A stretch of DNA of 64,000 nucleotides, from NCBI GenBank assembly GCA_964035545.1, contig OZ037766.1, forward strand, positions 29,390,640-29,454,639, written 5' to 3'. A program made the translations under genes and the position numbers. Positions 7,401 to 37,619 of this stretch are shown one piece after another. This DNA comes from Bugula neritina (lineage: Eukaryota; Animalia; Bryozoa). Under the pieces are notes generated by a model. That model was not told the origin of the DNA, made no database searches, and saw only the letters and a list, made by a program, of their open reading frames with translations. Each line of letters starts with the position of its first letter. Positions within the stretch are counted from its first letter, which is position 1.

Positions 7401-8359
7401 AACAAATTTCTAGTACATTCTCACTAACAGAACCTTGTTTACAGCTTTGAAAGTCAAAAAGGTCAAAATCGGAGTTATCTCCCCCATTTTAAAACGTTGC
7501 CCTTTTACCCGATATTAATGCATTTTATTAATTGTGTTGACATCATTATAGTATAAGTTTAAGCTTAGCCTGTTTTTCATTTCTTATATGGCTCATTTCC
7601 AGTACATAGTTAGAGGAAATACTGCTTTAAACGCACGTATGTGAAATTTTTCATCTCGAATAACTATTAACATTTAATACTTGTTTGATGATAAATTTTG
7701 TGCGTTCTGCCAGTCACGCACATGGGTAAACGGCAACTTTATAACATTCAATTAACAGAAGATTATTTTAAAATAGTAACAACTTATGAACAATGCAGGA
7801 ATAATTAATCTTGAAAATTGGCCAACCCATGTGTATCCACCTGTTTCAAGCAAGAATCCCCAGATACGAAAAGTTACTTGCAAATTTGAAATCAATAGAA
7901 TGTTGGCTTTGCAGTGATATATAGCAACAGTGTGCTCCACCCACCCTTTTTTGTATGTTGGCACTCCAACTATAAAACACATGTTCTAACCGGTAGATGC
8001 GTTTGTCATGTTATGGAGCTTGTCACTCACTCACTAGTCACTGGTTTGAAATGTATACACTATTATTAGCCATTTGTCATTTACCAGTAGTATGTGTAGT
8101 GTATGTCATCTTATTAAAGATGCTTTAATGGAGAATTATACTGACGAGGACATGATATTTTCTGACATCATCACATACTTGATTGCAGGATCTCACACAA
8201 CGTCATTCTGTAAGTCAAAATGCAAGATATATACACATACATATACACATACATATACACATACATATACACATACATATACACATACATATACACATAC
8301 ATAATTACATATACACATACACAAACACATACACATACATATACACATACATATACACA

Positions 8360-8390
<31 letters not shown>

Positions 8391-9115
8391 CACTCTCCAG
8401 CCTACTTGATGTCCTGGAAATTAATGCACATCAAGTTCAACTGATCTGTTGGAAAAGGTGAACGTAAGCACTTAGTGTAAAGTTTAGACTAGGATTATAA
8501 CTAAAGTAAATAGTTTTCTGATGTGGGATGTGTGATCAGTTTTAGAAAAATCTTAACAATCATAACATTTACTCTGAATACTTTATTTGTTTCATTTTTT
8601 TTCTATCCAATACTTATGCATATTTTAGTTATGATGTGGGCCTTATATTACCTCGCCACACATGAAGATATGCAGGATAAATTATATGCTGAAGTGACTA
8701 AGTACTACAAAGGAGGCCCTATAACTTGGGACACGATTAAAAACATGAAGTATGTTGCATTTTTCTCTCTTCCATGTTGAGAAGCCCCTCAGGCCTCAGC
8801 ACTTGCATTTGATTTGACTGGTTTTGTTAAACTGCAGTTGTTTTCTCTTCTTATTACAAAAAAATTTGCCTTTGGTAACTAGGTAAACGTGTTACAAATT
8901 AATAGTCAAAAAACATTAATATGATTTTCGCTAGTTGTAACATAGTTATATATTTGGAAAGTTGTATTTCTGAAACTTGAAACTATAGCCATTTTCAATT
9001 TGTTGTGTACAGAGGAAGTAATTATATATATTTTGCTAGCTCATGATTTGTAAATAATTTAAATTTAATTTATTTTATAGTATTCCGCACATTACAGTCT
9101 ATGATCCCATATATA

Positions 9116-9205
<90 letters not shown>

Positions 9206-9211
9206 CACGCA

Positions 9212-9258
<47 letters not shown>

Positions 9259-9274
9259 ATATATACATATATAT

Positions 9275-9355
<81 letters not shown>

Positions 9356-11386: not shown

Positions 11387-12689
11387 TATATAGCATTTCT
11401 TATTTTATTTTATTAAAAGATGATTTATCTAGATCTATTTTATTTTATTTTTATTATAAATCTTCTGGTCGAACTTCTATAAAAAGTTATATTTTTGCTA
11501 TAACTGAATGTTGGTGTTCTATGATTCAATTGAACTTGCAATACTAATAGTTTGATGATTTTATTGTAGTTGAATAATTTTAATGATTGCGTTGAACTAC
11601 TTTTTTCATTTTTAAAGGCTTGGCTTAAATATTTTAGCTACTAATTTTCTTCATTGTTGCTCTTTTTTCTTATTGATCGATATATTGATAGAGCAAATAT
11701 TTCATCATCAGCTAACTTTTTTACACATTAAATTGTGGATTCTTAATAACTCTAAAAATTTACATTGGTTTTGGCTTTTCTTTATGGCTATATTATATTC
11801 AGATCAATAAAATATTTTCAGCAATAAATTTATTGTATTGAAAATTTTTTGAAACATCTGTGTTTATGGAAATTGCATGAAAACTCGTGAATAATCATTA
11901 ATTTTACATCTTTCGGTTTACAAAATCATTGTTTGATCAAATTGGTTTGATTTGAACATTTTAGTGATTGCACTATCTAAAGTGCAGTCACTATATGATC
12001 CAATGAAAAATTAAGAAATTTGTTATAAATCTCAGTTTACATTCAGAACAAAATATACCCTACTGGAAATTATTTTTTCACCATATGGCAGATTAGAGTT
12101 AACATTCACACAATTACTTGTATGTCCACATCCAAAGTGTTTTGCCAATTACCAAATTAATTTGCCATGTACGTTACATATTAGACAGTATATTATGCAT
12201 CGAATATAAATTCCTGGATGATGTATTTGAAAATTCAATTAAATAATAATTGACCTGAAAATGATTTGACATATGACTTGCTATATCATCAGCATGTGTA
12301 TAATTTATTATAGCATTGTATACAACAAATTAAAAAAGTTTTCAGGTTAACAAACGTAGCAATTGAATTAAAAATAACATATAAAAAGATGAAGTCCAGG
12401 CAACACATATTGACGCAATCTCCTGTTACCGGTATGACGATGATGAGCTCTTTATTTGATAAAATAATACACGAAAAAAAGAAAGTACCTCTATTTGCAG
12501 GCAAAGATGAAAGGTTAATATTTCCGAATGTATAAAAATACAATCTACAGTATAATTGCTTTCTGTGCAACAGTTTTCACAAATATTATAGGGTGCATAT
12601 GATATTATGAAATACAGTATGATACTTGAAAATAAAGATTGTATTGAGTATTATATTGACAATTATTTGAGATTTGTTTCGAAGGAGTT

Positions 12690-13742: not shown

Positions 13743-16700
13743 ATGATACTTCCATATGGCGTATCTGCATGTCTTATACTTGCAGTTATACTTATTGTCC
13801 TAGGAACTGTGTTTTGGCTTTACCAGGTGAGTTCAACAACTTTAACTTTCACGTTTAATTAGTCAATTACTCTTAGTCTTAGTCTTAGTAATAGTAATAC
13901 TAATAGTAATACTAATAGAGTAATAGTATTAGCATTACTAATGCTATTACATTACTATTACTAATACTATTAGTATTACTATTAGTATTACTATTAGTAT
14001 TAGTATTACTAATAGTTATTATAGTAATACTAATAGTAATAGTAATACTAATACTAATAGTAATAGTAATACTAATAGTAGGCCTAATACTAATAGTAAT
14101 AGTAATACTAATACTAATAGTAATACTATCAACTATAACATTAACTATTACTATTAATATTACTATTAGTATTAGTATTACTAATAGTTATTATAGTAAT
14201 AGTAATACTAATACTAATAGTAATACTAATACTATTAACTATAACATTAACTATTACTATTAGTATTAGTATTACTATTAGTATTAGTATTACAGTAATA
14301 CTAATAGTAATACTAATAGTATTAGTATTACTTTCAGTATAAGTGAGTGACTATGACCATAATAATAATCATAATGATTACTAAAACTATAACCAGATTA
14401 GGTATGACATTAACCACAAATTGAAGTATAACTATAAGTATTATATCATTTTGATGACTGTTAGTGTTAGTATTACTATGACTTTAGTATGACTATGGCT
14501 ATCAGCAACTGCAAAGTGCAATCAGCAATGACAAGCTGAATTATTATCAAATTAAACTGTCAGTGCCAATATGAATATATTTGTGCTTATGTCTATAGTT
14601 ATAGTTATACTTATACTTATAGTGATACTAATAGTAATACTAACTCTAATAGCAAATGTTTTACTAATAATAATAGTAATAGTTTAATGGATAATACTAA
14701 ATGTAATGCTACTAGTGGTAGTACTGGTTAGACTTTATAAAATATTATTTTTAAATTAAAAGAATTTCATATTAAAATCGATTTTGAAATTTTAAATGAA
14801 ATATTCATGATCTTAACCTCATGAGTTACAGTAAAACATACTTGAAGTTGATAATCAGTTTCTTAGTCATACTAAACTTGCATTTACACGTCTTCCTAAA
14901 TTTTACTTTGAACAATTCTAAACAGTTAGAGTTTAAGCCTGACCTTCACCCCATAAGAGTAATGCTACTAGTACTAGACATTTGAGCACAGTAAGATTAA
15001 TGTAAACTGTGTAATAAAAATTTAAATTGAAGGTAAAACTAAATTTATTAGTCTATGATTTTCTGTAATGTTGTATGTTGATATTTATTGGTACTGGGTT
15101 TGAGAGAGAGCTTGATTGTGCTCAAACTCAATTGTTTAAGATACTAGTAGTTGTTTCATGCTTCGTAATTTTGTTGACTCAAAAACAAAAATGATTGACA
15201 ATCTCCTAAAATGGGCAGCTGACTAGTGAAAAACGGCATTATGATTGGTTTGTTTTTCATTGTAGGGATCGAACAAGATATCTACAATTCCTGGACTTGA
15301 ACCTGGCTCCGGCTCGTACGTTTGTTTTTTGTATTATGATATTTGAGCAGTTTTTGTGGAAATTGTAAAAAAGTTAGTGCAGTATGATTTCAATTTTACA
15401 CCATAGTTCCTTTTCAATAAACAATTCAGTTTAAATAATTTATAATTATATGTATATCATACCACGTTTATATTGTTTTATTGAAATACTGCCTACGATT
15501 ATGTGGCAATAGCTATAGCATATTAGATAGCTATAACTTATGATTGTTTAACTGTAGGATGTAACTTTCTTAAATGTACAGCTTGCATGTGTCTATAGAT
15601 TTAGATCACTCTTCCCTTTAGAAAAGCAATAGACTAACAGTAGAGGATTTTACTAAATAATGCTAGATAATGCACTATAAATGTTTAGCATGCTGTGATA
15701 ATTGTAACATCTTCTATTACGTATGAAAATTAGCATACTAATTTTTTCGACTCTCTTAATACCTGACAACATCTATTGCAGAGATGGAAATATTCTGGAC
15801 GTTCAAAGTGCTGGTAGCATGGCAGAGTTTCTTGACAAATTACACAACGAGTTTGGGCCTATAGCCTCCTTCTGGATTGGGAAAGAGTTTACTGTTAGCA
15901 TAGCCAGTCCCGAGCTGTTCAAAGAAGTTTCGCATATGTTTGATAAACCAGGTAACTTGTTTGATGACTGAAAACACTCTAAGCAGAGCACTACTTACCA
16001 CATGTAAGCAGCTATAGTTGTACTGTTTTCTTACTACATATCATATTTGTAGTAGGTACGGATACGATACTCACTGACTGTGTATAACTTTCAGTTTTTA
16101 TATTGTAGTAACTCTGTTTAAAAGCCTTGAATCACTTATTGGCCCTCAAAGCATTCAATACAAAAATGGACCTGAAGGCCAACAACTGAGAAAACTTCAT
16201 GACAGGTCCTTTACTCAGGCCAAGGTCGTCTCTCAGATGGCTCTCCTTCAAGAGGTGTAGATTTGAGTCATTTCTCTTTGCTATTCTTATAGATTTCAAA
16301 AGTCGGCTTTAGATTAATCTTGTACAAGTTTCCTTATGTGGCCTGTCAACAGGCTGGACAATACTGAACATATGCTAACTGAGTTAGACTAATATTTTGT
16401 CCTATAGTTTCGAGTTGGAGGATAAAACATAGAATTGACCTAGCCATCATACTATACCGTAATTATTCTATCCTATTTTGTTCTATCCTATCTTCTGTTT
16501 TCTATTCTATCTTATGTTATCCGATCCTGTCCCATTTCAGTAGAATGAGAGATTTTTCCCGCTATGTCAAAAATGCTCTCATGTTTTCAGTTAAGACTCT
16601 TTGCTATGGTATAGTTTCATCTACTATATCATTTGTTATAATGCACTATGGTGTAAAATATTATGTTGTAATACACTATGTTATGATACACTATGTTATA

Positions 16701-19700
16701 ATATACTATGTTATAATATACTATGTTATGATACACTATGTTGTAATACACTATGTTATAATACACTATGTTATGATATACTATGTTATAATATACTATG
16801 TAATCATATACTATGTTAGAGTACAATGTGTTGTAATAGTTAATACACTGTATTTTACTTTTATAAGTCTTCTTTTTCAGTTAGCTGAAGAGGTTCTGAA
16901 AAAGTGGAGCAAGATGGCCGCTGCTCAAGAACATGTACCACTTGAAAGGCACATGTCGCCTCTTGTCATGAAATCTCACACTCGTTTTGCTTTTGGTGAA
17001 TATTTCAAAGATGAGAAAGCGTTGCTAGCTTTCAGAAATGAGAGTGATTTTGTGAGTGATACAGTAGATTTTGTATGTATCCTTGTTACTACCTTCAATT
17101 GTTTTAGGTCATTTAATTGCTTGGCATCAGAAATACTTCTTTGTGAAAATTGACTGTCAAGCATACTTTCTCTTTTGTTTCTGCTCTAACTTATGTGGAG
17201 GTCAATGGTAATGTAAGCTGATCATACCAGCAGCTGATCATTGGGTGCTCTGCCCTATCTACATCATCAATTTCATCTATAAAGAGAGAAGCCCACGGTT
17301 TCCTAGCATCTTTTTGATTTCTGAGTACTTCAATCGCCTGCTGTCATTTTACACCAAAGTCATCATGTTATGTTCATGTTCTGGTGTTGACAGTGTTTCT
17401 GGGCGATGGAGAAAACATTAGTGGAAGGACCAATGAAACCCGGAAGTGATCGAGAGAAAAAGTTCAAGGAAGGTAAAATGAAATGTTTTGTTATTTTGCA
17501 TTATACTTGTAGATCTTCTATTCACCTACATAATTTATATATTAATAGACACAATATTATTTAAGTTATTGGTATAATTTATCTCCCTTTATTTACTATC
17601 AGCTACCTGGATATACCTGTATTCACCTGTATTTACCTGTATCTTGATATTTAATGCCAGGTATTCAACGCTTGAGAAATGTCACTCATGAACTTATCCA
17701 AAAGAGAAAACAGGAAGAAATATCTCCAGATGACCACATATTGATTGGTAAGAGGTGTTTAGTATTTATATATTCTCGTATGACATGTGGAATATATGAC
17801 CAAATAAATGGAACACACATGATGTATTAAGAGCTGGCAAGAGCTGTTGTGTGTGTCTATATTTTTGTAAGGTATGTAAAATCAAGGACTAGATACATAA
17901 AAACACTCAATGTAGTAAAACTTTGATTTACACTAATTTTTTTATGTCTGTTGTTCATTTTGACAAGCTGGTATAAAATACTTTCTTTAAAACACAAGTT
18001 TTAGCTAGTAAATAAGTATATTCTGTTATGGACGTTGTCTTATACTAGCCAATGGTTTGAAATGTACAGTATTATTCATCACTTGTCAAATTCTAGTATT
18101 ATGAGCAGTATAATGTATGTCTCCTAATCACAGATACTTTAATGGAGAATTACACAGATGAGGACATGATATTTTCTGATGTCATCTCATACTTGACTGG
18201 AGGAGCTCACACAACGACATTCTGTGAGTTGAGCTGAAAGATATATTTATATAGCTCTGCGTCGGCAGTTTTCACTGCGATGACTCATATTGACTTTGTA
18301 TAATATAGTGTAGACTCTGTATAATCTACTGTTTACTTTGTATATCTACTGTTTACTTTGTATATCTACTGTTGGCTTTGTATAATCTTGTGTAAACTGT
18401 GTATAATCTACTGTTGACTGTGTATAACATACTGTTCACTTTGTGTAATCTACTATAGACTTGGTAACTAATATTAGTAATGTTTCACTTCCCTAGAATT
18501 TAATGTATTTAGTACTGATTCTTTGTGTAACTTATGTTTACCTTTAGTACTGGTCAATCACTTACCATCCCACTAGATTACTTGGAAATTAATGCATGCA
18601 TAGCTAATCTATTGGAAAATGTTAACATGTAAGCGGTTAAGGTAGAGTTTAGACTAGGATTATGATTATAATAAGTAGTTGTCCGATGCGGGAGATGTGC
18701 CAAGTTCTAGAATATATTATTAACAATCATTCTGAGTATATCTTATTTGATTTTGTGTTACTTTTCTTCTCCTGTCCAACATTGATACATATTTTAGTTA
18801 TGACATGGGCCTTATATTTCCTCGCTACACATGAAGACATGCAGGATATATTATATGCTGAAGTGACTAAGTACTACAAAGGAGGTCCCATAACTTGGGA
18901 CACGATTAAAAACATGACGTATGTTGCATTTTTTACCTTTCAGTGTTTGATATTGCGCTTACATTCAATTTGGCTGGTTTTGTAGGACTGAACTTGTTAT
19001 CATAGTACAAAAAATTGCTTTTTGTGAAGACAGTTCTTTTACAAATTGTAAGTCAAAAGAAGTTCAATAGAGTTGCTGTTAGCTGTAAAGTGATTATGTA
19101 ATCAGGGAGTTGTATTTCTGAAGCTTTTAAACTGTAAGCATTTCTAACTTTTATGTGTAGAGGAAGTTATATTGTTATGCTAGTTCAACATTTCTATTAA
19201 ATTTGATTTTATAAATATTACTTATTTCTAATGTATATGAATTTTAGTTACTTGGGAAATTTTATGAAGGAGACTCTTCGACTCTCCAGATTGGTTCCCA
19301 TCGCTGCCCGTCTTTCCTCCGATGAAGGTCAGCTCGGTGGTCATGTGATACCAAAAGATGTAAGTCTGTCTTTTCAACATGCTTCAAAACTGCTTTGTTA
19401 TAAAATTCTTACTACTTGCTGATACACTTCCAAGTAGTTTATACATAAACTAAACAAATAAAGCTGTGTTTAGGTATAGCCATCAGTAGTGCCAACAGTC
19501 ATACTAGGAGAAGACAACTAAGACAATAGGCAACCTCAATGATGTTATATTTTTCTAAATGATCCTGAGATTTGTTTTACCTTTTACAATACAATAATGT
19601 TGGGAGGCAAAAAGTTGTATGGTAACTTGCGGCTATATAGTAAGTTTCTAGACAGATTGGTTTTGTGAATGTAATTTTCTGGTGTTACACTCTTGATAAC

Positions 19701-21734
19701 AAAACCACTGCAGTTTTAGCATGTTAAAACATTGAGTTATTTTTTGTGGTTTTATTCACAATTATATTTATTTCTTTGATTTTGGTGAAACAACTGTACC
19801 TGTTGTCATATTATCTGAAAATTGAAAACATGCTTTTTGACCCTTAAGAATTGAGCTAATACGAATTAGTAAACTTTAAAAATCCTGTTAATTTAATAAA
19901 ATCTCTACAATATTCAAGTTCTAGCTTAGAGAAATAAACAAGACGTTTTTCCAAGCAATTTAAAAGTATTAGTGAGAATACATATTTTATATATTGTTGT
20001 GTTTTAATATAGAAAAATATTTATTGTCGCAGACTGAGAGAAAATAACAATGTGAAAACTGTTACATCATAAGTTATATCTGTAGTAGCAAGTTGTAAGC
20101 GGCAATTGTAAAGGTAAGTGAAAATGCTGGGTTTTTATACCAGTCAAAAGGTTAGCTATTGTGTAGTAGCCATAATGAGTGTGGAAAAAGCATAATATAG
20201 ATGATACATGAAAAGCTATAAAGAATTAAAGAAAAGCTTTCCCAGCGTATGTAAAGTCCCAACATATATTTTTTTAATTTTTATTTTATTGGGTTTGTAA
20301 CAACAGATTTAGCTCATGCTTGAATTTGTTTTCTCTTTGTGTCTTATTTTCGATTTAATCTTCATAAAAATAGCGGTAAAGGCAGAGAGCACACAACTAG
20401 TGACTTGGTCATAACAGTTCAAGGGTAATTGTTTTGTGTGCCTGTGATTCCACGTCAATGTTTTGAGATCTTGTAAGGAAATGTTCTTGTTCTGTAGACT
20501 CCAATAATAACATCAATAGGGACTGTGTCAATTGACAAGAATCTTTGGAAGGATCCGGAAACGTGAGTACAATTTACTTCCTTCTCTTTTACTACTCAGT
20601 TCTTTGTTTGTAGTTATCTTTCCTTCGGCAGATACATTTTACAATGTTCTCAAAAGATAATATTTTTAGTTGACTAATTTTTATTTTCTGGTCTCAGTTT
20701 GATTATAGATGCTACTTTTCTCGTATGTCTTGTCCAAAGCCTATATCAATCAAATTAATATAATTATCAATAAAAATTCTGTTCATCTTCACATACTTGC
20801 CATGTCAATGGTTGTTTCCTTTAAAAAAGATATAAATATATTATTTCTCCTGGTTTTTATGTTTCACCTCCCTAGGTAAAATTGAATTGTTTTGCACTTG
20901 TACTTTTTATCATTGTCCATTCTTGTTCGTTTATTTTTTTATTCTTGTGTTAGGGTTAAGAATTTGCAATAATGAACATTAAAATGTTGTTTAATTTAAA
21001 TTTTGCTGAAGTTTATATATCTGGTTAGTCAGTAATACCCGCAGCAACAATTGTGATATCGTGACTTTGTTTAATCTGTTACTATATATATTAGTTGTTC
21101 TGTTGCTTCTTTTCCAGCTTTAACCCTGATCGGTTTAATGAAAAACCTCCAAGGTTTGCGTTTGAACCATTTGGTTTTGCTGGAAAAAGAAAATGCCCAG
21201 CCTATCGACTTTCGGATGTGGAAGCCAGCATTTTCATGATACTAACCATCAAACAATTTAAGGTAAAATACTGTGTGAGAATTTGTGTACTCTTCTTATC
21301 TAGCATACTCAAACATGTTTCATTTTGGATGAGATTATAAATTTATTTTCTCAGCTTCTAATATTAGTATAGCTTTTAAATGTGAATTTTATAAATATGA
21401 TCATTATATGAGCTTTTACATATTTCGTTAACTTAGCCTGTAAAATGACGATAAATAAAATTATTGCAATTGCCTAAACTCATTGCACTTTATCTGCTAA
21501 AAATGGTGGTGGGCCTAGGGCCACCACCATTTTTCATTTAATTAACAATTGCAATTTTCAATTTAATACCTTTTCTACAGTTTGCTTTCTTGTAAAAAAT
21601 TTTTTTATCAGTTTATTAAGCAGCTTTTTGATTGGTAGGTTGCTTTGGTTCCTGGCCAAGTAGTCAAGAATTTGTATGGATTTGTTACTAAACCAGCTGA
21701 TGAAATATGGCTGACAGTGCAAGAAAGGAAGTAG
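13743..21734 (+). CDS. CYP20A1: Cytochrome P450 CYP20A1-like, copy 2 (complete, 13 exons, 471 aa)
   Basis: Exons 13743-13826 (membrane anchor MILPYGVSACLILAVILIVLGTVFWLYQ), 15266-15315, 15782-15951, 16109-16254, 16881-17051, 17394-17472, 17661-17747, 18134-18223, 18798-18918, 19248-19359, 20498-20562, 21118-21262, 21639-21734. Exons 2-13 have the same sizes as copy 1. Motifs [27 protein letters not shown]. Confidence 0.92.
13872..14335. repeat. AT-rich low-complexity array of TAGTAA/TACTAA/TAGTAT hexamers in both orientations
   Basis: Visible at the start of CYP copy 2 intron 1. Confidence 0.85.
16635..16818. repeat. 15-bp minisatellite (CTATGTTATAATATA-like)
   Basis: About 11-12 tandem units in CYP copy 2 intron 4; a degenerate version sits near 5740-5830 in copy 1. 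Confidence 0.85.
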
Positions 21735-22422
21735 TTTAACATTTCTTATCTTATATTATGTTATTAAAAGATTATTCATTTACTTATTTTTATCACAAAT
21801 TTTCTAGTCTTATTTCTATAAAAATTTGTATTTTTGCTACATCTGAATGTTGGTGTTCTATGATTCAACTGAATTTGGAATACAAATAGTTGAATAATTT
21901 TTATTATTGCGTTGAGTTACTTTTTTTACTTTTATTATAGGTTTGGCTTTCATATTTTGATTAACCATTTTAGCTACTAATTTTCTTCATTGTTACTATT
22001 TTTTTTATTATTGATCGATATACTAATATAGCAAATATTTGACTATCTGCTCTTTTACACATTGAATTGTGGAATCTTGATCACGCTGAAAATTGACATT
22101 GATGTTGGCTTTACTTTGATGACATTTAGGTCAATAAAATATTTTCAGCAATTAATCTACTGCATTGAAAAATTTTCGAGACATCTATGTACATGGAAAT
22201 TGCATAAAAACTAGTGAATTATCATTAGTTGTACATCTTTTGGTTTACCAAATCATTGTTTAATCAAATGAGTTTGATTTGAACATTTTAATTATCGCAC
22301 TATATCTAGAACCACTATGATCCAATGAGAAATTAAAAACTTTGTTATAAATCAGTTTAGATTAAGAACAAAATATTTTGGAAGTTATTTACTCACCACA
22401 TGGCACTCCATAACACGGTAAT

Positions 22423-22538: not shown

Positions 22539-23026
22539 TGCAGCAACTCGTGTTAAGAAATTACTGACTTATGCTTTGCATTGTAAAAACTGCTGTGGAA
22601 TATTCTCATAATTTCAAACAGTAATTTTACTTTAAAAGTGATAAAAACATGATGGTGCTTCCTAACAGGTATAACATGCTTCAGATTATGATGAAAGATA
22701 TTATTTATACATTACATAACACAAATTACGTACGCAAAACCCATCATCTGATAACATTTCCCTAGAGACTTGAAGTACAAAACGCTTGACATATAAAGAT
22801 ATTCAAGCTGATTTCATATTGCACAGCACACTGTAGCCTAGCAATTTGAACTGATTCAATGATAGCTTGATTATACTAGCATTGTTCTCTTTAAGTGTTT
22901 CCTTAAATCTCAGTTTAGGTTGATTTACTTTTTAATAAAGTTATTTGTTTAAAATAAAAATAAAAATTCAACTGTTGAGAAATTCTTTTACAAGGAAGAA
23001 TTACTCATATCTACTTCAAGCTAAAC

Positions 23027-23063
23027 TATAAAACACAGCGCAAATACAGATGTGATATCATTT
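23027..23063 (+). promoter_or_regulatory. Putative TATA box plus initiator of the BRICHOS gene
   Basis: TATAAAA at 23027-23033 and TCATTT (Inr-like) at 23058-23063, about 31 nt apart and ~70 nt upstream of ATG 23131. Confidence 0.45.
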
Positions 23064-23130
23064 CTCTGTGTAACTTGCTACTCACCAGAGTTATACAGGA
23101 GATACTATATTAGGAATCCAGAACTCTATT

Positions 23131-25758
23131 ATGAATAGTAAAGAGATACAAGTAAGTACAGAGCGTCACAATTTAAAGTGAAGTTTAATACAACATATTA
23201 CAAGTTTAATATTGCCATACTAATCTATATTTTTTTAGAAACTGCATAATTTTCTTCACATTTCATTTTTATAGCATTATACACATTTTTATTAAATTTA
23301 AGTCTCATTTAATAAAAATAAAATGGTTTTCCATTTTAGTTCATCACAAGAAAATTTAAAAAATATACATAACAATTTCAATGCTGTGTCTATTAAATGA
23401 TTCATCAGCAGGAAGAAGTGACCAGTTGTAAAGTGACAAGTAAACTGCAGGTGCTTGCTATGACGATCTTCATACTGGCAGCTCTTTTGACAACTACTGT
23501 AGGTGTTCTCATTTATGCTGCCCTAGTTCCCAATGTGTCCTGTGTTCCTACAACTAGACAGCCTGCTGACTATGAAGAAACTATACATACGGTGAGTTTG
23601 GTACAGAAGCTGTTGTCATATAGTGCAACAAATAAACTAACAGTTTAGTATTCAAAAAAGTATAACCACATATCAGACAGTTAGCATAAATAAGTGATTT
23701 AACAAGAAAAAAGTATGGCTAAATAGCAGTTTTTTGAAAATACCAGCTTTTACAGTAATTTGTACACTGCAGTTTTATACTTGATTTAAGAATAATTTAC
23801 AATATGGATATATTGTAAGTTTTAATAGGAACGGTTAAAAACAGATATTATTCTAATTTTAGAAAAAATAAAAGTATCATGTAGCAAAACATGCTGTACG
23901 TTTTCGAACTAATAAATAATACAACTTTCTATGTTTGTATATAATACAGGATCAGGAATACGATATAGAGCTAGCATTCAACAGCAAGGAAAATATTGTC
24001 ACTTTAACGTCCAGAGCTGGCAGCTTCGATTTAGAAGACTTCGAAAAGGTAAATAAGAAAAAAATAAAGTTATTTAAACAGATTGGTGAATAAATAAAAT
24101 CATAAAAATTTAGGATGCTTATACGTGACTTATACAGTATATATAACAAACCACTAGCATTCAAAACTACCACAGCAATTATAACATAGGCATAGTAACC
24201 TGTATTTTATAGTTGCGTATTTTATTGCATGTTTAATTGACCTTGTAGTTCACAGAATTTATTTTATTATGTCATGTTGTTTTTATACATGATGTGCAGT
24301 TGCCTTGTCCAATAAATTAATATCACTTTGTAATTAATATATATAACTATTTCTTAATGATTTTATAGGACTTGAATGAGTTAGTGAAGCAGCAAAGCTT
24401 ATATGCAACTGTTATTCTATGATATGAGTTTTATATTAAACATAGTAATTCACACTTATTGGAAACATTACGTCTAATGTTGATAATTTTGTGTAAATAT
24501 GTTATTTGCTTTGATGGTAAATTAGGCGCCTTAATTTCTAAAGACTGATCACTCTTTAGTTAAATTGATAAATCTATATTTTATATAAATGATTTTGTTT
24601 ATGTAATATAATATGTAGGACATGTAATATAATATGTAGGACATGTAATATAATATGTAGGACATGTAATATAATATGTAGGGCATGTAATATAATATGT
24701 AGGACATGTAATACAATATGTAGGTCATGTAATACAATATGTAGGACATGTAATATAATATGTAGGACATGTAATATAATATGTAGGGCATGTAATATAA
24801 TATGTAGGGCATGTAATATAATATGTAGGGCATGTAATATAATATGTAGGGCATGTAATATAATATGTAGGACATGTAATATAATATGTAGGACATGTAA
24901 TATAATATGTAGGGCATGTAATATAATATGTAGGACATGTAATACAATATGTAGGTCATGTAATACAATATGTAGGACATGTAATATAATATGTAGGACA
25001 TGTAATATAATATGTTGGATATGTGATATAATATGTAAGATATGTAATATAATATGTAGAACACGTAATACAATATGTAGGACATGTAATATAATATGCA
25101 GGGCATACACATAACTAAAGACCTCAATTCTGGCATCTGTTATGTGCTGCCGTCCACACAATCCGCTGCCGAGAGTGACCTCCTCACCGAGCACTTTCAA
25201 GTAGGCCGGAGCAATGTGACAGTTGAGATCAACTTCACACCTGTCAGGGTGTACCCCAGTATGATTACAGACACCAGTTTTATACCAGCTGAAGCTCATG
25301 GTCATTGTGTAAATGGGTACCAGTGGGCTTCTATCTTCCAACCAGTTTCAACATCTGGTAAGTATACCATTGAATATATTAATAGCAATATCATATTATC
25401 ACAAGGCAGTTAAGGAGTCAACATATAATGTAATTGGAAATAAACATACATTTAATATTTAATATGAAAAATTAGACATCAGAAAATGCCATAAATTATT
25501 TTTGGTATTGAAAAATGATATGTCCCTCTATATAGTTACTATCATCACTAAAGAGAATGAACTACGCAATGCAATTTTATGAATTTGTTGACTAAAAGCT
25601 GCATATACAAATCAATACTAAAAACGCATGATGGTTGCATATTTACCATAACCATATCACAATGATATAAGTTAAATGAATTATTGACTTTTCTTTTAGG
25701 AATTGTTAAGAGAAAAGCCGATGTAACAATTGAAATTAAACTCATTATCAAAAAATGA
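23131..25758 (+). CDS. Type II membrane BRICHOS-domain peptide precursor, isoform a (~204 aa; C-terminus GIVKR-KADVTIEIKLIIKK)
   Basis: Exons: 23131-23151 (MNSKEIQ); 23412(or 23409, NAGNAG)-23591 (TM helix VLAMTIFILAALLTTTVGVLIYAALV); 23950-24048; 25102-25357; 25700-25758. All GT-AG with matching phases (0,0,0,1). BRICHOS-like signature DFEKGIHITKDLNSGICYVLP...ITDTSFIPAEAHGHCVNGYQWA with the two expected Cys. AATAAA near 25864. Confidence 0.8.
24601..25101 (+). repeat. 21-bp minisatellite TAATATAATATGTAGG(A/G)CATG, about 24 copies, abutting BRICHOS exon 4
   Basis: Visible tandem units; the last unit supplies the real acceptor (ATGCAG|GGCATA). Confidence 0.95.
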
Positions 25759-25927
25759 TTTGTTTTTGAACTATTATCACAATTTCGAACACAAAAGAAA
25801 ACAAAAACCACAACTTTGCTAGTGTAAACACATCATGCTGTATAATAATGTTTTTATAATTAAATAAATAAACAAAAAGACGGTGCCAAAACATTATAAC
25901 ATTATGTTGTTGATGTTTTTTTTCTAG

Positions 25928-25986
25928 GTGTTGAAAAAAGAAAAGCTGATGTATCAATTGAAATTAAAATTGTTGTCAAATTTTAG
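25928..25986 (+). CDS. Alternative terminal exon 5b of the BRICHOS precursor (GVEKR-KADVSIEIKIVVKF*)
   Basis: Strong acceptor (T)nCTAG, same phase 1 and same 59-nt coding length as exon 5a, homologous sequence, own downstream AATAAA near 26146. Confidence 0.72.
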
Positions 25987-26538
25987 TTATAATCACTGGC
26001 ATACTATTTGCATTAGTTTGTGTGCTTTTATCTTCTTTACATAAATATCTATGACAATATTTATGTGTATGATAATACTTTTAGATCAGATTTTGTTCTG
26101 CTTTATACTTTTTGTAACATTTACCTGCTGAATTTATTTTATGAAAATAAACTTACTAAAACGGAACAGCAAAAAAACTGTTTTACTTATATAATGATCT
26201 TGAGGAACAACTGTGTGCAGAAATGAAAATACAGTATGCATTCTAAGTCATAGAATTAATTCTTCTTGCAAGTTAATCTAGCAAAATTTTAATAGTTTGA
26301 ATGTATTTTTAGCTTTTCCAAAGTACTACTTGAAAATGCCTTTTAACAATCAGAATATAGATCTATGTTAAACTGATACCCTACGCATACAGTTCTAATG
26401 CTATAATAAAATATGCTGTCATGTTTTTGCCAAATTTTAGTATTCTGATATTAAATTAAACCTTATCAAAAAAAATATATCTGTTCAGCTTTTATTAGTT
26501 ATATATAAGGCTCAATATAGTTGACTATATAAAGGAAG

Positions 26539-26923
<385 letters not shown>

Positions 26924-28906: not shown

Positions 28907-30783
28907 ATGAAGATTATTGTGGCAATTTTACTCTTAATGGTTTTCTCACTGAGGTTTTCTAGTGGTGAAGATGCAAGTCTTTCTTATGACCTGTTCAATA
29001 ATGGTAAGTTTTTCTAAATCTATTTATATATAATGAAAACATACATAGTGGTAAGACAGATTAGCATAAAATTTAATATTTATATAGAAACAAATAATGC
29101 TAGTTGACAAAGTGTAATTATAATTAGTAATCTGTTAGACAATTTACATTCTATGCAAGCATCGAATTTAGTTTCTCAAAGCTGAATAATCATGACAGTA
29201 ACTTTAGTTCCTCTCTATATTTGCTGTGAAATGAAGGTATAATATGCTAGTTCTACTGTAATAAGACATATATTGTTTTAATATTTATATATACAGGTTG
29301 CATATAGTTTGTAAGTTTTTCTTCCTAAGCATTATATATTTCTATACATTATAATCCTAATAACTTTGTAATATAGTGTCATATGTAATTCAATATTATG
29401 TTACGGTAAACCTTTTCTACATATTTTGTTATAACTTTTTACACAGTATATGCATGCAATCTTTTTATATATTTAGAAAGCTAATCATATTTTTTTCAAG
29501 AATAGAGTAAGGTTATATGCTATTAGTATATTACATCAGTTACGGCCAGTTCTAATTCATTTGATAAAGTTATGTGAGCTAAAACTCAAAATATACCTTG
29601 AAGGCATTATAGCAATAACATCAATACATTTGAGAAGATAAAACAAAGCATAGGCCAGTTCTAGGATTCTATAATTAACATTATAGAGTTTCCATTCTAG
29701 CAGACTGAACTGCTTTGAACATTATAGTTCGATAAGTTTGGTTTTTGTTAATTAGAAGTCACTTTATGCATAAAGCAGTTACTTATTGAACATATATAGC
29801 TGATGATTTGCTTACAATGGAGCTAATAAAGTTATAGTTACTTATACAGCCAGGCATATGTAAGCTAGATATGTTTTATTTTATGTGAAAGAAGCAGCTA
29901 TATATAAATATAAATATCAACTATTCTTAATCTAGAGCTGCAACCCTTACAGAGCAAATAAACTATTATTTTTAGTCAAAAGCTAAAACAATAACACTGG
30001 GTTGTGTATGCAGTATGCATTTACTGATCATCGTAAATTTATATTTCTTGCATTTTAGATGACTCACTTAAACTAAGGTTTGAGCTCTTTGAAGAAAGAG
30101 TGAAACTTCTTCAAAAGATCTTAGCTGTAGACTGCACTACTGAGCAGCTTCATAGAATAAAGAGAGACATAATTTCTGGTCATGGAGAAAGTCAGTTGTT
30201 TGTGGAAAAACTTCTTTACCAGAAGTTGATCAGGAGACTCAGTGAGTGCAGGCAAAAGTCAGCATCAACATCAACAATGAGAATGTCAACGCCAACATCA
30301 ACGTCAACAGTTACATCAACATCAACATCAACAGTTACAGTTGAAAGTACTACAACAAGTAAACCATTTCCTCTGGAATGTCAGACAGCAACAAATCTAA
30401 CTGAGATCTGGAGAGCTGACAATAAAGGAATGAAACTTACACCTATAAACAACTCTCCAGCATGTGATACACGTCAAATGATAGCCAATGGCAGGCCATG
30501 GTTCAGATTTGCTGGAAAAGCAGGAAATAAGTTACTAGACACGTGCCCACCTCCTTACAGTTGCGGGTCTTATATTGGGTTTTGGAGTAACGCTACAATG
30601 CCATCTAAAGTTGGTGTAGCCACACAGGTGAAAGCGTATGGCTCTTGGACAGATGGTTGTTATGAGTTTCCAATATACATTAGAGTAATGAGATGCTCCA
30701 CACCTAGCCAGCATGATCTTATCTACCAGTATGCAGATAGAGATATATGTCACAACTCTTTTTGTGGAATGAAAGTTGAATAA
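28907..30783 (+). CDS. Secreted UMOD/GP2/OIT3 D8C-like domain protein, copy A (273 aa)
   Basis: Exon 1 28907-29003 (signal peptide MKIIVAILLLMVFSLRFSSG) and exon 2 30059-30783. Contains RIKR site, S/T-rich linker, and Cys-rich domain C..NLTEIWR..CD..WFRFAGKAG..LDTCPPPYSCG..W..C..IRVMRC..IYQ..C..FCG. Confidence 0.82.
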
Positions 30784-31448: not shown

Positions 31449-32261
31449 AGTGGCTTAGATTTTATATGACAAGTATAGTACTATAAGCTTTTCGTACAGT
31501 AAGCTGTACTTGTCATGCAGGTACTAAACTAAATACAAGCTCCATAACCAGCAATAGTGTACTATTGAACAATCTGCTTTAAGCTACATCCCTATAACTA
31601 GACTGGCAACCTCACTGCACGCACAAATACGAGCATATACACTCATGTACAAGTAAACCCTCTATAATATATTGTAAACTGAATTCATATACAGTAACTC
31701 AATTGTAAAAATTAAGCATCATAATCAAGCTTTTTGAAAAATAAATATATATAGATCATTGGTTTGTATTAGCAACATAAAAATAAACATATAATTATGA
31801 AAGCAATCCAGCCATTTATATTTTAGTTATACATTATGCAGCAATGTAAGACAACTTCCCAACACACATGCTATGATGTTTTTAATGCTGCAGTTTTGTG
31901 TTCAAATAATTATTGCTAGTTGAATAAGAAATTTTCCTTTAATCAGCTATATCGGACCTCATAACTAATAAAAGCTGAACAGACAGATTATTTTTAATTA
32001 TAAGTTGAATTTAATATCATAATGGTAAACACTTGCCAAAACATGACAGCAGATTTTATTGCATCACCTAGAACAGTATCCATAAGGTATCGGTTTAACA
32101 TAGATCTATATTCTGATTGCTAAAAGGCATATTTAAGCAGTCTTTTAGAAAATCTAAATATACATTCAAACTATTAAATTTTTTTGAGATTACTTTGAAA
32201 GAGGAATTAGTTCTATGACTTTGAATGCATACTGTATTTCCATCTCTGCACACAGTTGTTC

Positions 32262-32780
32262 TGTGGTAAATATCAGATTTATCTCCCTTGACACATTACT
32301 TATGGTTATTTTTCTAAATACTGTAGTTACAGCTAAGTCTGTGGCGTAACTTTCTAATACCTTAAAATACTATGGCTATTGTTAAGCTTTTAGCATAGTA
32401 AATAGTTAATCCCCTTTCCCCCAATTACAAGTTACAATACGCATACACTTGGTTGGGTTCATTTTTGCTTATTCATGTAAACCGACAGTTGGACCGAATT
32501 GATCGGCAGGTAGATGCCGGCAAACCAAATGTCGGTTACCAACATGTTCAGTGTTGAATGCTGCCATCCCCTGCCGAGCATCAGGTCAAAGGTTCTAGAA
32601 GTCCTTTGTCCTACTGGTATGAAAAGAGCTTCAGTCACTTGAGGACTGGAGCTTGCACTGGATGTATCTCTGCTACAATAAAGTACTGCACGCACACGAA
32701 TTCTACTCTCTCTTGTCTCTTCTATAACAAGGAGTTATGTTCTCTGCCGATTTCATTCTATAACCCACAAAACTACTACA
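32262..32780 (+). mobile_element. Solo LTR (519 bp)
   Basis: TGTGGTA...TACTACA termini, 4-bp TSD GTTC (32258-32261, 32781-32784). The empty site is visible in the paralogous sequence near 26205. Internal AATAAA; homologous to 3700-4083. Confidence 0.85.
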
Positions 32781-33902
32781 GTTCCTCAAGATCATTATGT
32801 ATTAGTAAAACAGCTTTTGCTGTTGCATTTCAATAAATTTATTTTCATAAAAATGAGTCAGCTGGTAAATTTTACAAAAAGTATAAAGCAGAACAAAAGC
32901 TGATGCAAAAATATTATCATACACATAAATATTGTCATAGATATTCATGTAAAGAGTGAAAGAAGGTAAAGCACAAACTAATGCAAATAGTATATATGCC
33001 AGTGATTATAACTAAAATTAGATAACAATTTTAATTTCAATTGATATATCAGCTTTTCTTTTTTCAACACCTAGAAAAAAATAACAGCAACATGATGTTA
33101 TAATGTTTTGGCAAAGTTTATTTATTTATTTAATTATAAAAACATAATTGTGCAGAGTGATGTGTTTACACAAAACTAGCAAAATTATGCTCTTTGTTTT
33201 CTTTTGTGTTCGAAATTGTGATAACAGTTCAAAAACAAATTATTTGTTGATGATGAGTTTAATTTCAATTGTTGGATCGGCTTTTCTCCTAATAATTCCT
33301 ACAAGAAAAAAAAATAATTTACTTAATTTACACAAATCTTATATGGTTATATAGTAAATAAGCAACCGTCATATTTTTTGTATTGATTTGTATATGGTTT
33401 TAGTCAGCAAATGCATAAAATTACATTGTGTAGTTTGTTTTCTTTAGTGATCATTATAGTAACTATATAGAGGGACATATCATTTTTCAATACCTAAAAT
33501 GATTTAGGGTGTTTTCTGAGCTTAACTTTTTAGATGATATATCTATAAGTTTATTTCTAACTATTTTGTTTTGACTTTCCATAAACTACCCTGTAAGGAT
33601 ACTAATGATACTGAAGTTAACATATAGTTAATGATAATACTCACTGGATGTTGAAACTGGTTAGAAGATAGAAGCCCACTGGTACCCATTTATACACAAT
33701 GACCATGAGCTTCAGCTGGTATAAAACTGATGTCTGTAATCATACTGGGGTACACCCTGACAGGTGTGAAGTTGATCTCAACTGTCACATTGCTCCGGCC
33801 TACTTGAAAGTGCTCGGTGAGGAGGTCACTCTTGGCAGCCGATTGTGTGGACGGCAGCACATAACAGATGCCAGAGTTGAAGTCTTTGGTTATGTGTATG
33901 CC

Positions 33903-34283
33903 CTATATATTGTATTACATGCTCTACACATTGTATTACATGTCCTACATATTATATTACATGCCCTACATATTATATTACATGCCCTACATATTATATT
34001 ACATGCCCTACATATTATATTACCTGTCCTACATGTTATATTACATGCCTTACATATTATATTGCATATCCTACATATTATATTACATGTCCTACATATT
34101 ATATTACATGACCTACATATTATATTACATGCCCTACATATTATATTACATGCCTTACATATTATATTGCATATCCTACATATTATATTACATGTCCTAC
34201 ATATTATATTACATGACCTACATATTATATTACGTGTTCTACATATTATATTACATGCCCTACATATTATATTACATGTCCTA
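33903..34283 (-). repeat. 21-bp minisatellite, about 18 copies (inverted paralog of 24601-25101)
   Basis: CATGYCCTACATATTATATTA units. Confidence 0.92.
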
Positions 34284-35175
34284 AATACATATGTATTATA
34301 TTGTATAAAAAATAATCTATTAAAGAAATGGGTAAACATATTAAGGTCCAGAAATAGATCCTAGCTATATAGAATATGTTTTACATAAAATCAAGGCTTT
34401 CTCTTTATAATCAAAGCAAATGCTTATACAAAAATTTATTAACATAAAGAGTATAGTGAGTTTTCAATATGTTAGATTTAACAAAACTAAATATCTAAAT
34501 TACTTTAATTAGAATACTTCACTAAATATTATGTTATGTGGTATACAACAATTTAAAATAGTTATGTAGTAATCATGAAATTATATTTTCATTTAAAATG
34601 ATATGAATAATTATATAAAAAGATTAGGATCTTGCAAATTACAAAATAAAAAAATACATACCAACAAGAGATTCTGACAATAACTAAGCTGAAAAGCAAG
34701 TTTAATTATTCTATGGTAAAATCTTTTACACTGCAGTTTAGATTATTTGTATAGTTTTAAACTTTTATGTTATTGTCCGACATATAATTGCAATTCTAGA
34801 TTTTATGTGCTTTATCTATGTAATTCCACCAGTGATAGAAGGCTTGTCAATTAGGCATTGTCTACAGATTACAACAACTCTGTTTTAAAAAACAACTAGA
34901 TATATATCTTGTTTATTAAAGCTTAAACAATGTAGATAAAAACATAATAAATGTATACATGTTTTTCTACTTTCAACCAATTAAGTTGCTCAGCAAGCTT
35001 GGTTTTGCATTTACTTAGTTTGGAAAAGTCAAAAGTTGAATACCAGCAAAAAAGAGAGGTGAGATCTGCAAGAGATAGAAAAAGCATAGTGGACACAAGC
35101 TGAGCAACTTCACATAACTGTAAATTGTTTCATATTCTTGTTAATAATTTAGTTTTTATATATATTATCTTTATT

Positions 35176-36996
35176 ATGATGAAGATTATTGTGACAACTT
35201 CATTTCTAATACTTTTTTCACTCAGGCTGCCAAGCAGTGAAGGAGGAGATTTGTTTGTTGGCAGTAAGTTCTTATAAGTTGGTTTAGAATGCTTGCAGTG
35301 TCAGTAATGTAGTCTATATTATAAAACATGAGTAGATATTTGTTAGGTAATTAAAATTCACCATTTATAAAAAATCGGAGTTAAAATATTCAATTGAAAG
35401 CTATCCTTTTGAAAAATTCATTTTTTCTATAAGCAATAAAATTTACTAATTTCTCATTAAAGCCGAATAATGCTTTTCACTAAATCAAAGTTTATTTAAA
35501 ATAAATAATATAATTAACATAATATATATTGTTTATCTTACTGCCAATGAATCAATTTATATTAAAAGAAATTCTATATATCCCGTATAACATACCCAAA
35601 CATACACATATGGATACCCAAACAATTGAGTGCAAATTTTGTATAAAAGGCATGCACTATTGGTTCCTTTTTTAAAATTTACTTTTGAGCAAGTTGCAAG
35701 GCTATATATATTTTGGTAAATATTAAAATATACTTATTGCAACATTATATAGAGCTAATAGGAAGATATTTTATCATCCTATAATATATAATTTGATAAT
35801 ATTATATTATACTACTATAAAACATTTTTAAAGTATTCAGTAATATGTATAATTATTTTCATATCTGCGTTTAATTGTTATTTATATTCTTTAACCGTGC
35901 AAAAAGTGCAAAATATTGTTTGGCGGGTAAAAACTGATTTAGGGTTGCATTTAGCACCTTGTTTTGTGTTATATAAAGTTTCTATTCAAGCAGAATACAC
36001 TACTTATAAAGATTATATTTCAATCTGTTGAAATTCTTTAAAACTTAGTAAAAGTCATTTCATACTTAATTTAGTTATAACAGTTTAGCAATTAACATAT
36101 ACCTGCTCTTTTAGCTATAATATAGTTGATAAAGTTATAGCCTTTTACAGTCAGACGTAAGCAGGATATGATATATATAAATACAAACATCATTAAATCT
36201 TAATCTAATCTATAACAAATCTTTAAAAGCAAACTGCAATATTTAACCGAAATTTGAATTAATTATACTGTTGTGTATGCAGCATGCATTGATGATTGTA
36301 TAAATTGAAATTTCTTGCACTTTAGATGACTCACTTAGACTAAGGTTTGAGCTGTTTGAAGAAAGAGTAAAGCTTCTTCAAAGGATGTTAGCTGTAAGCT
36401 GCACCACTGAGCAGCTTCATAGAGTAAAGAGAGACATCATTCCTGGTCATGGGGAAAGTCAGTTATTTGTGGAGAAACTTCTTTACCAGAAGTTGATTAT
36501 GAGACTCAGTGAGTGCAGGCAAGAATCAACATCAACTTCAGCAGTTACAGTTGAAAGTACCACAACAAGTAAACCATTTCCTTTGGAATGTCAGACAGCA
36601 AAAAATCTAACTGAGATCTGGAGAGCTGACAATAAAGGAATGGGACTTACACCTATAAACAACTCTCTAGCATGTGATACACGTCAAATGGTAGCTAATA
36701 ACAACCCATGGTTCAGATTTGCTGGAAAAGCAGGAAATAAGTTACTAGACACGTGCCCACCTCCTTACAGTTGCGGGTCTCAAGTTGGGATTTGGAGTAA
36801 TGCTACAATGCCATCTGATGTGGGTGTAGCCACACAGGTGAGAGCGTATGGCTCTTTCACAAATGGCTGTTATCAGTATCCAATATACATTAAAGTAATG
36901 AGATGCTCCACACCTAGCCAGCATGATTTTATCTACCAGTTAACAGACACAGATAGCTCGTGTTCCTACTCTTTTTGTGGAATGAAAGTTGAATAA
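35176..36996 (+). CDS. Secreted D8C-like domain protein, copy B (252 aa)
   Basis: Exon 1 35176-35263 (MMKIIVTTSFLILFSLRLPSSEGG...) and exon 2 36326-36996. Intact frame, RVKR site, shorter S/T linker. Confidence 0.8.
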
Positions 36997-37619
36997 AGCT
37001 GAGTCTTATATTCTATGAAAAATATGTCAGGTATAAAGTGCAATTCCTATACCTTTTCAGATTTTTATTACATTAATCTTACTTATGCTTACGTGCTTAC
37101 TTTTATTCTTACTTTTAATATTAGATATTATTAAACAAAATGTGATGAGAATTGTCATTTAGATTTTGATAATAAATTATATAAAAAACAGCCTGAGCTA
37201 AATAAGTAATTTCATATATTTGCAGTCAAATTTCTAACATCAAATTGATCATCCTAAAACTTGCAATTTGAGAAGATAAATTCAGGTTTCATGAAACTTC
37301 TGCAATCTATGAATGACAAACCTTACCACCAGCAATAATATAAATATAGCAAAAGAACTTAGATATTTCGGGCTATACGAGGCTGCAGAATTTGAGCTTT
37401 TACTACTGCCATATTTCCTGAAGATGAATTTACCATTTTATAATTTTTACAGTGTTTGTAGAAACTAAGCAAATTACAAAGTTAGTATTATAGCTCTTAA
37501 ACCTGCTAAGAAAATAATTTCAACCTCACGATATACAACAACATACCAATAAGTAAAAGAGTAAAACATAAAGATAATTGTCAGAGTAGAGTTAAGATTC
37601 TTGGTACAGACAGATCTAC

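Follow-up and report, generated by a model that had tools for sequence, protein, structure and literature searches.

A BRICHOS-like peptide precursor gene of the bryozoan Bugula neritina with two tandem, candidate alternative terminal exons

Precursors of related design

BRICHOS domains are studied as anti-amyloid chaperones, and those of worms carry potent antimicrobial peptides. The gene described here lies in a stretch of 64,000 nucleotides of the Bugula neritina genome (contig OZ037766.1, positions 29,390,640 to 29,454,639 of the forward strand), referred to as the window, whose own numbering is used throughout. It occupies window positions 23131-25986, codes for a precursor with a predicted membrane anchor and a BRICHOS-like luminal domain, and ends in two tandem homologous mini-exons, 5a and 5b, termed cassettes. 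Each of them codes for a dibasic Lys-Arg (KR) site and a beta-prone peptide. A preliminary description of the DNA had proposed that one BRICHOS scaffold delivers either peptide by choice of the last exon.

In the polychaete precursors of antimicrobial peptides with a BRICHOS domain, an N-terminal hydrophobic segment is followed by the BRICHOS proregion, a dibasic site and, at the C-terminus, a short peptide (PMC6265681, PMC10745061). The last exon carries the peptide in alvinellacin, a member of a multigene family (PMC5431198). The overall architecture of arenicins, alvinellacin, nicomicins, capitellacin and the HfBRI peptides is also that of the Bugula gene. Their cargo differs: it is a disulphide hairpin or a helix in polychaetes and a 14-residue, cysteine-free single strand of charge +1 or +2 in Bugula. 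Variation of the worm peptides results from gene duplication, and the worm papers describe no gene with two terminal exons: PMC5431198 does not contain the word “alternative”, nor PMC10745061 the string “alternative splic”. In the literature searched, no paper dealt with BRICHOS peptide precursors of bryozoans or with BRICHOS genes that have alternative terminal peptide exons.

ITM2B/Bri2 shares with the Bugula gene the type II transmembrane segment, the linker, the BRICHOS domain and, after the convertase site, a short beta-prone peptide at the C-terminus. In the language-model and Atlas fold searches, ITM2 clusters rank among the best matches; at the sequence level no match was obtained. Unlike the Bugula peptides, the Bri23 peptide of ITM2B forms a hairpin held by a disulphide and is released at a furin site, and we know of no tandem alternative terminal exons in ITM2B.

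Two systems with other scaffolds are also close in layout. In the calcitonin/calcitonin gene-related peptide (CGRP) gene CALCA, common upstream exons are joined to one of two terminal regions, each with a peptide, a stop codon and a poly(A) site. The CALCA peptides are unrelated in length and their choice is proven and tissue-specific, whereas the Bugula exons are 80% identical duplicates whose alternative use is a candidate; furthermore, the CALCA scaffold is not a chaperone domain. In cathelicidins the hypervariable mature peptide is encoded by the last exon only, and the prodomain on the exons before it is conserved. Their cathelin fold is not BRICHOS, and their diversity arises by gene duplication, not from two last exons in one gene.

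The gene and its two terminal cassettes

The locus is a real gene that codes for a protein of ~206 residues. The coordinates, phases, acceptors, stop codons and peptides of the preliminary description were all reproduced when the sequence was re-read over 22800-26400 and the proposed exons were translated. The gene features are:

23131..23151, + strand: putative exon 1, MNSKEIQ, phase 0, donor GTAAGT
23409..23591, + strand: exon 2, with a short cytosolic part, a hydrophobic signal-anchor/transmembrane stretch of ~26 residues and a linker
23950..24048, + strand: exon 3, predicted to form the first strands of the BRICHOS-like domain, with SFDLEDF as the candidate for its conserved Asp motif
25102..25357, + strand: exon 4, core of the BRICHOS-like domain (GICYVLP ... 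HGHCVNGYQW), phase-1 donor
25700..25758, + strand: terminal exon 5a, G-IVKR-KADVTIEIKLIIKK-stop, acceptor ttttcttttAG
25863/25867, to 25872, + strand: AATAAA signals after 5a
25928..25986, + strand: terminal exon 5b, G-VEKR-KADVSIEIKIVVKF-stop, preceded by ttttttttctAG
26146..26151, + strand: AATAAA after 5b

Exon 4 ends in ...TCT G/GTAAGT, a phase-1 donor. This single donor is followed by the two terminal exons, each with an acceptor, a compatible phase, a stop codon and a poly(A) signal. The arrangement is retained in L017, the orthologous locus of a sibling lineage, and the AATAAA signals after both cassettes are retained in L017 and in an inverted, broken copy of the gene in the window (copy B, see below). 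Cassettes 5a and 5b are 80% identical over 64 nt (25689-25752 versus 25917-25980; local blastn E 2e-12), a likeness that on this alignment is beyond chance. It spans only the TTGAY branch-like motif, pyrimidine tract, AG and coding sequence up to the stop codon, beyond which 5a and 5b have 3' flanks that cannot be aligned to each other. As judged from this comparison, the terminal mini-exon, with its KR site and its peptide together, was tandem-duplicated long ago. In the genome (216 Mb in 321 contigs), cassettes of the KADV..IEIK type were found only at the window locus and in copy B and those of the RIKWPK type only at the paralogous loci L003 and L004; the two-cassette layout is unique to the window locus and the broken copy B. 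The region is not a repeat family by the genome-wide search, and Rfam gave no match on 22800-26600. No match to the cassette core was obtained among metagenome contigs, from which near-identical records may have been excluded.

The whole gene is carried by two Joint Genome Institute (JGI) metagenome contigs, L017 and L018, which are 99.97% identical to each other. Every open frame and 9/9 splice dinucleotides are intact in L017. The divergence between the window and L017 is distributed as follows:

Intron 1: 16%
Exon 2: 4.4% (the L017 indel is in frame)
Intron 2: 19%
Exon 3: 6.1%
First part of intron 3: 11.5%
Exon 4: 3.9%
First 56 nt of intron 4: 12.5%
Rest of intron 4: 7.5%
Cassette 5a: 1.7% (1/59, synonymous)
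Spacer between 5a and 5b: 20%
Cassette 5b: 5.1% (3/59, all non-synonymous: VEKRRADVSIEIKIVIQF)
After 5b: 16-18%

In this comparison both cassettes are conserved islands between the two lineages: against their own flanks (58 substitutions in 333 nt) the Fisher P value is 0.0006 for 5a and 0.011 for 5b. The two homologous terminal exons claimed by the preliminary description are present, and each is less diverged than its flanks. The frame and the acceptor of 5b are intact in L017. This island conservation is the best evidence available here for 5b and suggests that it is not inert DNA.

The upstream exons are also conserved. An upstream start exon is required because exon 2 of the paralogs has no in-frame ATG, and the small exon 1 of the preliminary description is supported: its L017 ortholog retains the ATG, the frame and the GT, reads MNSKGIQ and has 2/4 synonymous changes, with an 8% diverged 5' flank. 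The start of exon 2, in turn, had to be moved. It is most likely at 23409, where the acceptor ttcatcAG (23408/23409) is homologous in sequence to the acceptor of the paralogs. The hydrophobic stretch of exon 2 is uninterrupted, follows a charged N-terminus and is kept in the paralogs, in L017 and in gene models of the bryozoan Watersipora subatra.

Exon 4 has 16 matches in the genome. The tandem pair L003 and L004 on contig C3 represents the closest intact paralogs, which share exons 2, 3 and 4 (~57% amino acid identity, 57% for exon 2), their boundaries and the phase-1 donor; the boundaries and the phase of exon 3 are identical. Each has one terminal mini-exon homologous to 5a, E-IVKR-RIKWPKIKITITITIRF and E-IVKR-RIKWPKITITIKITIRF, respectively. 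The mini-exon with IVKR and an alternating peptide is therefore a conserved part of this gene type. A further paralog at C9:7900543-7900789 (L005/L006) has a frameshift and a TGA inside exon 4 (two TGA in the L006 match), and no terminal cassette is found within 1.4 kb. It is probably a pseudogene, though the B. neritina gene model KAF6016716.1 is built on it. The nearest database proteins are bryozoan, namely KAF6016716.1, which matches the C9 paralog, and several W. subatra RefSeq models; exon 4 is homologous to the full-length Watersipora models. The protein homology search with exon 4 gave one match only, a 65-residue read-through open reading frame (ORF) on a metagenome contig. The type II transmembrane segment and BRICHOS-like scaffold, the dibasic site and the short beta-prone C-terminal peptide, recognized in the preliminary description, form an architecture common to the Bugula paralogs and the Watersipora RefSeq models.

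The search of sequencing runs gave twelve candidates, none on record as RNA, whose guessed-RNA rows held 5-10% of the query words. The contigs of four of these runs were aligned to 25095-26400. One contig per run was found, all on exon 4, and six listed contig differences all match L017, so that these RNA-like runs come from the sibling lineage. The word depth on exon 4 is 5-13 in three runs (~40-50 M letters each, from three studies), too high for the ~0.2x genomic coverage; exon 4 is therefore very probably transcribed.

That the locus is an expressed gene for a BRICHOS-like precursor in which the exon 4 donor is joined to either 5a or 5b, giving alternative beta-prone peptides, is a proposal that we hold in even balance. 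A number of results count against it. The junctions 25357>25700 and 25357>25928 are absent from the four runs and nothing was placed on 25366-26400, noting that Logan contigs show presence and not absence, and that the lineage of these runs differs by ~4% in exon 4 and by 16-20% in the untranslated regions (UTRs), the latter being below the likeness threshold. One contig, X3 (25095-25365, depth 13), overruns the donor by 8-12 nt, followed by 34 letters in an open frame. This tail is absent from the genome (at up to 3 mismatches) and from L017-L019 and may represent a third copy, an interrupted intron or another 3' end; it supports neither cassette junction. The AATAAA signals alone are weak evidence at a background rate of 1.9 per kb in the AT-rich DNA of the region. 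Since all three 5b changes between the lineages are non-synonymous (KRK to KRR, V to I, K to Q) and 5a and 5b differ from each other mostly by amino acid replacements, the constraint on 5b may lie in its DNA rather than in its peptide. Cleavage at KR and any peptide activity are predicted only.

Some of these observations would also be accounted for if only 5a works and 5b is a leftover of the duplication, located immediately past the end of the gene or, if the 5a mRNA is longer, in its 3' UTR. In that case the conservation of 5b would stem from a function in the UTR or in regulation, or from chance in so short a stretch (59 nt). Cassette 5a is far more constrained (1 synonymous change versus 3 non-synonymous ones in 5b), a proximal acceptor and poly(A) signal would normally win, L003 and L004 manage with a single cassette and no 5b junction was seen in the four RNA-like runs. 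Such a leftover is less easily reconciled with the AG, the pyrimidine tract, the TTGAT branch-like motif, the phase, the KR and the open frame that 5b keeps in the window, in L017 and in copy B, with a divergence 3-4 times lower than that of the DNA on both sides, and with a likeness to 5a that stops exactly at the stop codon. Use of 5a only is possible, at a tentative level of confidence.

The C-terminal peptides and the luminal domain

Both peptides have 14 residues, no Cys and room for one strand only, and the disulphide-linked antiparallel hairpin of mature BRICHOS peptides is absent from them; the Watersipora relatives include Cys-rich C-terminal peptides. The strand-type hydrophobic moment of the two 14-mers is 2.1-2.3 (170 degrees) versus 0.6-0.7 for a helix (100 degrees), their net charges are +2 and +1 and their hydrophobic tails are LIIKK and IVVKF. 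Designed self-assembling peptides of the EAK, RADA and IEIK types are synthetic repeats of alternating hydrophobic and charged residues. The Bugula peptides share with them the alternation, the IEIK core and the strong strand-type amphipathic moment. They differ in being natural and in having a hydrophobic tail, and self-assembly is only a candidate property.

KR precedes the peptide in both cassettes (IVKR/K and VEKR/K), and KR or RR is found in the paralogs and in the Watersipora models. At the sequence level this is a proprotein convertase site in which the furin P4 Arg is absent. The dibasic pair is kept immediately before the hypervariable C-terminal segment across the Bugula and Watersipora family members. 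The missing P4 Arg (IVKR, VEKR) would be explained if the C-terminal strand is not released and docks on the beta-sheet of the domain or mediates oligomerization, with KR as a polar linker; the two exons, if both are used, would then tune the scaffold rather than deliver cargo. The typical BRICHOS cargo, a disulphide-stapled hairpin (PMC9714404), would also require a longer peptide, and the C-terminal part of the full-length Watersipora model forms strands, at low confidence. This explanation is nevertheless unlikely, as the dibasic KR/RR is conserved in Bugula and Watersipora members with wholly different cargo, and worm BRICHOS peptide precursors of the same design are processed (PMC6265681).

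The luminal domain is likely to belong to the BRICHOS superfamily. Structure tests were run on the Watersipora homolog P0005, which is 35% identical to exon 4 (family alignment A2). The language-model search placed gastrokine, ITM2 and proSP-C clusters first (score 0.89; 182-184/256 features shared), and its ten best family-bearing matches all share the family or clan of the best one. In the ESM-Atlas fold search the four nearest clusters are BRICHOS/OAF (132-139 residues aligned, root-mean-square deviation 3.1-3.4 Å). The BRICHOS fold is composed of four antiparallel strands, helix 1, short helix 2 and strand 5, preceded in the Bri2 type by extra N-terminal strands (PMC9714404). The domain-only AlphaFold model of P0005 (predicted local distance difference test, pLDDT, 84; predicted template-modelling score, pTM, 0.78) has two N-terminal strands and then four others, the last of which bears the first Cys; a long helix, a pair of strands, a short helix beside the second Cys and a final strand follow, in an order that matches the Bri2-type topology of PMC9714404. 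The homolog model has its N-terminal transmembrane helix at residues 19-43. The Cys of GICYVLP aligns with the near-invariant C114 of A2 (C60 of A3), on model strand 60-64, and that of HGHCVNGYQW with the invariant C172 of A2 (C118 of A3), just after the short model helix 112-115. These are the positions of the conserved BRICHOS Cys pair on strand 4 and short helix 2, and a disulphide is predicted between them. BRICHOS domains also have a highly conserved Asp where strand 2 ends (PMC9714404). A candidate Asp motif lies ~17 residues before the first Cys (SFDLEDF in the window, GFDLEDY in the paralogs, SFEVDDF/GFDFDDL in Watersipora); it was matched by inspection, as MAFFT had misplaced the short exon 3 row of alignment A1.

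Sequence profiles and solved structures speak less clearly for a BRICHOS domain, and some of them against it. Neither the single exon translations nor, at the window locus, the six-frame scan of the genome gave a BRICHOS match in Pfam; the best homologs score 17.2 bits (E 0.006, P0006) and 13 bits (E 0.12, P0012) against PF04089, below its gathering threshold of 25 bits. The family profile gave chance matches only among PDB sequences, and no solved BRICHOS was found by sequence. Foldseek aligned 2yad with a probability of 0.82-0.87 and a template-modelling score by target of 0.52-0.55, but an E value of 0.15 or worse. The solved BRICHOS entries 2yad, 8rnu and 8ovi recur at VIA Z scores of 4.5-4.9 only, compared to 5-6 for LolA/ependymin, and for both the full and the domain-only model BRICHOS is one of many equal weak matches. 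The BRICHOS assignment of the preliminary description is hence favored by the language model, the Atlas folds and the Cys positions and disfavored by the sub-threshold PF04089 scores and the weak solved-structure matches. A LolA/ependymin-like lipid-binding half-barrel is suggested by the best solved-structure Z scores (LolA, LolB and ependymin, 5.5-6.1, slightly above BRICHOS entries) and by the low Pfam score. It is improbable: no PDB match stands out (all Z < 8), the solved BRICHOS structures are small and partial, the four top clusters of the predicted-model search are BRICHOS/OAF, only BRICHOS-clan families appear in the ten best family-bearing language-model matches, the two Cys and, by inspection, the Asp are placed as in BRICHOS, and the order of transmembrane segment, domain, KR and peptide is the BRICHOS one (PMC9714404).

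Proposed mechanism, intron elements and genomic neighborhood

The protein would have, in this order, a short cytosolic N-terminus, a signal-anchor transmembrane helix, the BRICHOS-like luminal domain (exons 3-4), a short linker, the Lys-Arg site and a 14-residue amphipathic beta-strand peptide. From the anatomy of the gene and its conservation, the donor would be joined to 5a (proximal, more constrained and probably the default) or to 5b (distal and faster evolving), with a separate poly(A) site for each cassette by analogy with calcitonin/CGRP. Either of the two related beta-prone peptides would thus pass through the secretory pathway on the same chaperone scaffold. The luminal domain would shield the beta-prone tail in transit, as the literature on other BRICHOS proteins suggests (PMC9714404, PMC6265681, PMC5431198). 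A Kex2/proprotein convertase-type protease would, on the BRICHOS precedent, cut after KR and free the peptide. The latter may act outside the cell, with antimicrobial activity or a self-assembling/adhesive material as candidate roles.

A main transcript that uses neither cassette, through read-through into intron 4 (stop at 25413, AATAAA at 25439) or a different 3' end, would agree with the 8-12 nt overrun of the X3 contig (depth 13) in open frame into unmatched sequence and with the AATAAA that follows the read-through stop, but is improbable given that this AATAAA is lost in L017, that the GT of the donor is conserved between the window gene and L017 and, in the same phase, in L003/L004, that the homologous terminal exon is conserved in the paralogs and that the X3 tail, which matches neither genome nor ortholog, may be a third copy or an interrupted intron. 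The read-through peptide itself was rejected as conserved coding sequence, being 12.5% diverged with mostly amino acid replacements.

Two other elements are found in the introns of the gene:

25485..25559, + strand: 75-nt block in intron 4, 100% identical in L017, with surroundings 7-20% diverged
24601..25106, + strand: 21-nt minisatellite in intron 3, 24 copies (Tandem Repeats Finder), unit ATGTAATATAATATGTAGGAC, directly abutting the exon 4 acceptor

The 75-nt block is ~95% identical in copy B and, on its conservation, is a candidate splicing-control element or relic cassette. Its start (25496-25518) weakly resembles the start of 5b. A regulated choice of the last exon, with this block as the switch that loads the BRICHOS scaffold with either IEIK-type self-assembling peptide, is a possible extension of the proposed mechanism, though less likely than not. 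For conserved long-range RNA pairing able to loop out 5a, only AT-rich, low-information pairs were seen. The acceptor pyrimidine tracts of the cassettes are complementary to the purine-rich KRK codons inside the same exon (25683-25722 and 25917-25950), over 16 nt at 81% for 5a; a small hairpin may mask the cassette acceptor, or the complementarity may follow from composition.

The inverted copy B is composed of:

~31961..34324, - strand: copy B, 5'-truncated inverted duplicate, 86% identical to 24580-26502
33646-33902, - strand: exon 4', with a 2-bp insertion and a TAA stop
33240-33298, - strand: 5a', homolog of 5a
33012-33070, - strand: 5b', with an early TAA, two codons short

It starts inside the minisatellite (18.6 copies at 33898-34287; ~10 copies are found in L017) and contains the minisatellite, exon 4', 5a' and 5b' without exons 1-3. 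Its ortholog L019, recognized by its flanks, has an intact exon 4' and has lost the whole stretch with both cassettes. The inverted paralog, which the preliminary description took to preserve the layout, is therefore a truncated pseudogene and not a working gene. Copy B was rejected as support for function, being a decaying partial duplicate whose cassettes are deleted in L019; its layout shows only that the duplication of the cassette predates it.

Repeated ORFs with a Cys-rich WFRF...CG...W motif are found at 26542-26892 (-), 30100-30783 (+) and ~36270-37300, between and beside both BRICHOS copies. The L019 ortholog of the WFRF-motif gene has a precomputed match to PF23283 (D8C_UMOD); the window ORFs themselves had no Pfam match at E <= 0.01. 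Further upstream, two window segments (~4440-11540 and 15190-21880) are matched by the one stretch L017:4242-11050, so that the window holds a segmental duplication of ~7 kb, in which one called gene has a weak p450 match. This stretch is located downstream of the BRICHOS gene in L017 and is inverted relative to the window; the gene order thus differs between the lineages.

The locus extends BRICHOS-peptide precursors to Bryozoa and points to very short, cysteine-free, strand-amphipathic natural peptides as candidates for antimicrobial or self-assembling behavior. If only 5a is used, it is still a snapshot of birth and decay in a fast-evolving family of peptide genes. If both cassettes are used, it would be a compact case of peptide diversification by exon choice instead of gene duplication, and the client peptide carried as a separable, duplicated exon would provide a natural experiment on one BRICHOS domain with different beta-prone clients. 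Were the choice also regulated, the bryozoan could switch its secreted peptide, between defense and a material or adhesive or between zooid and larva, without duplicating the chaperone.

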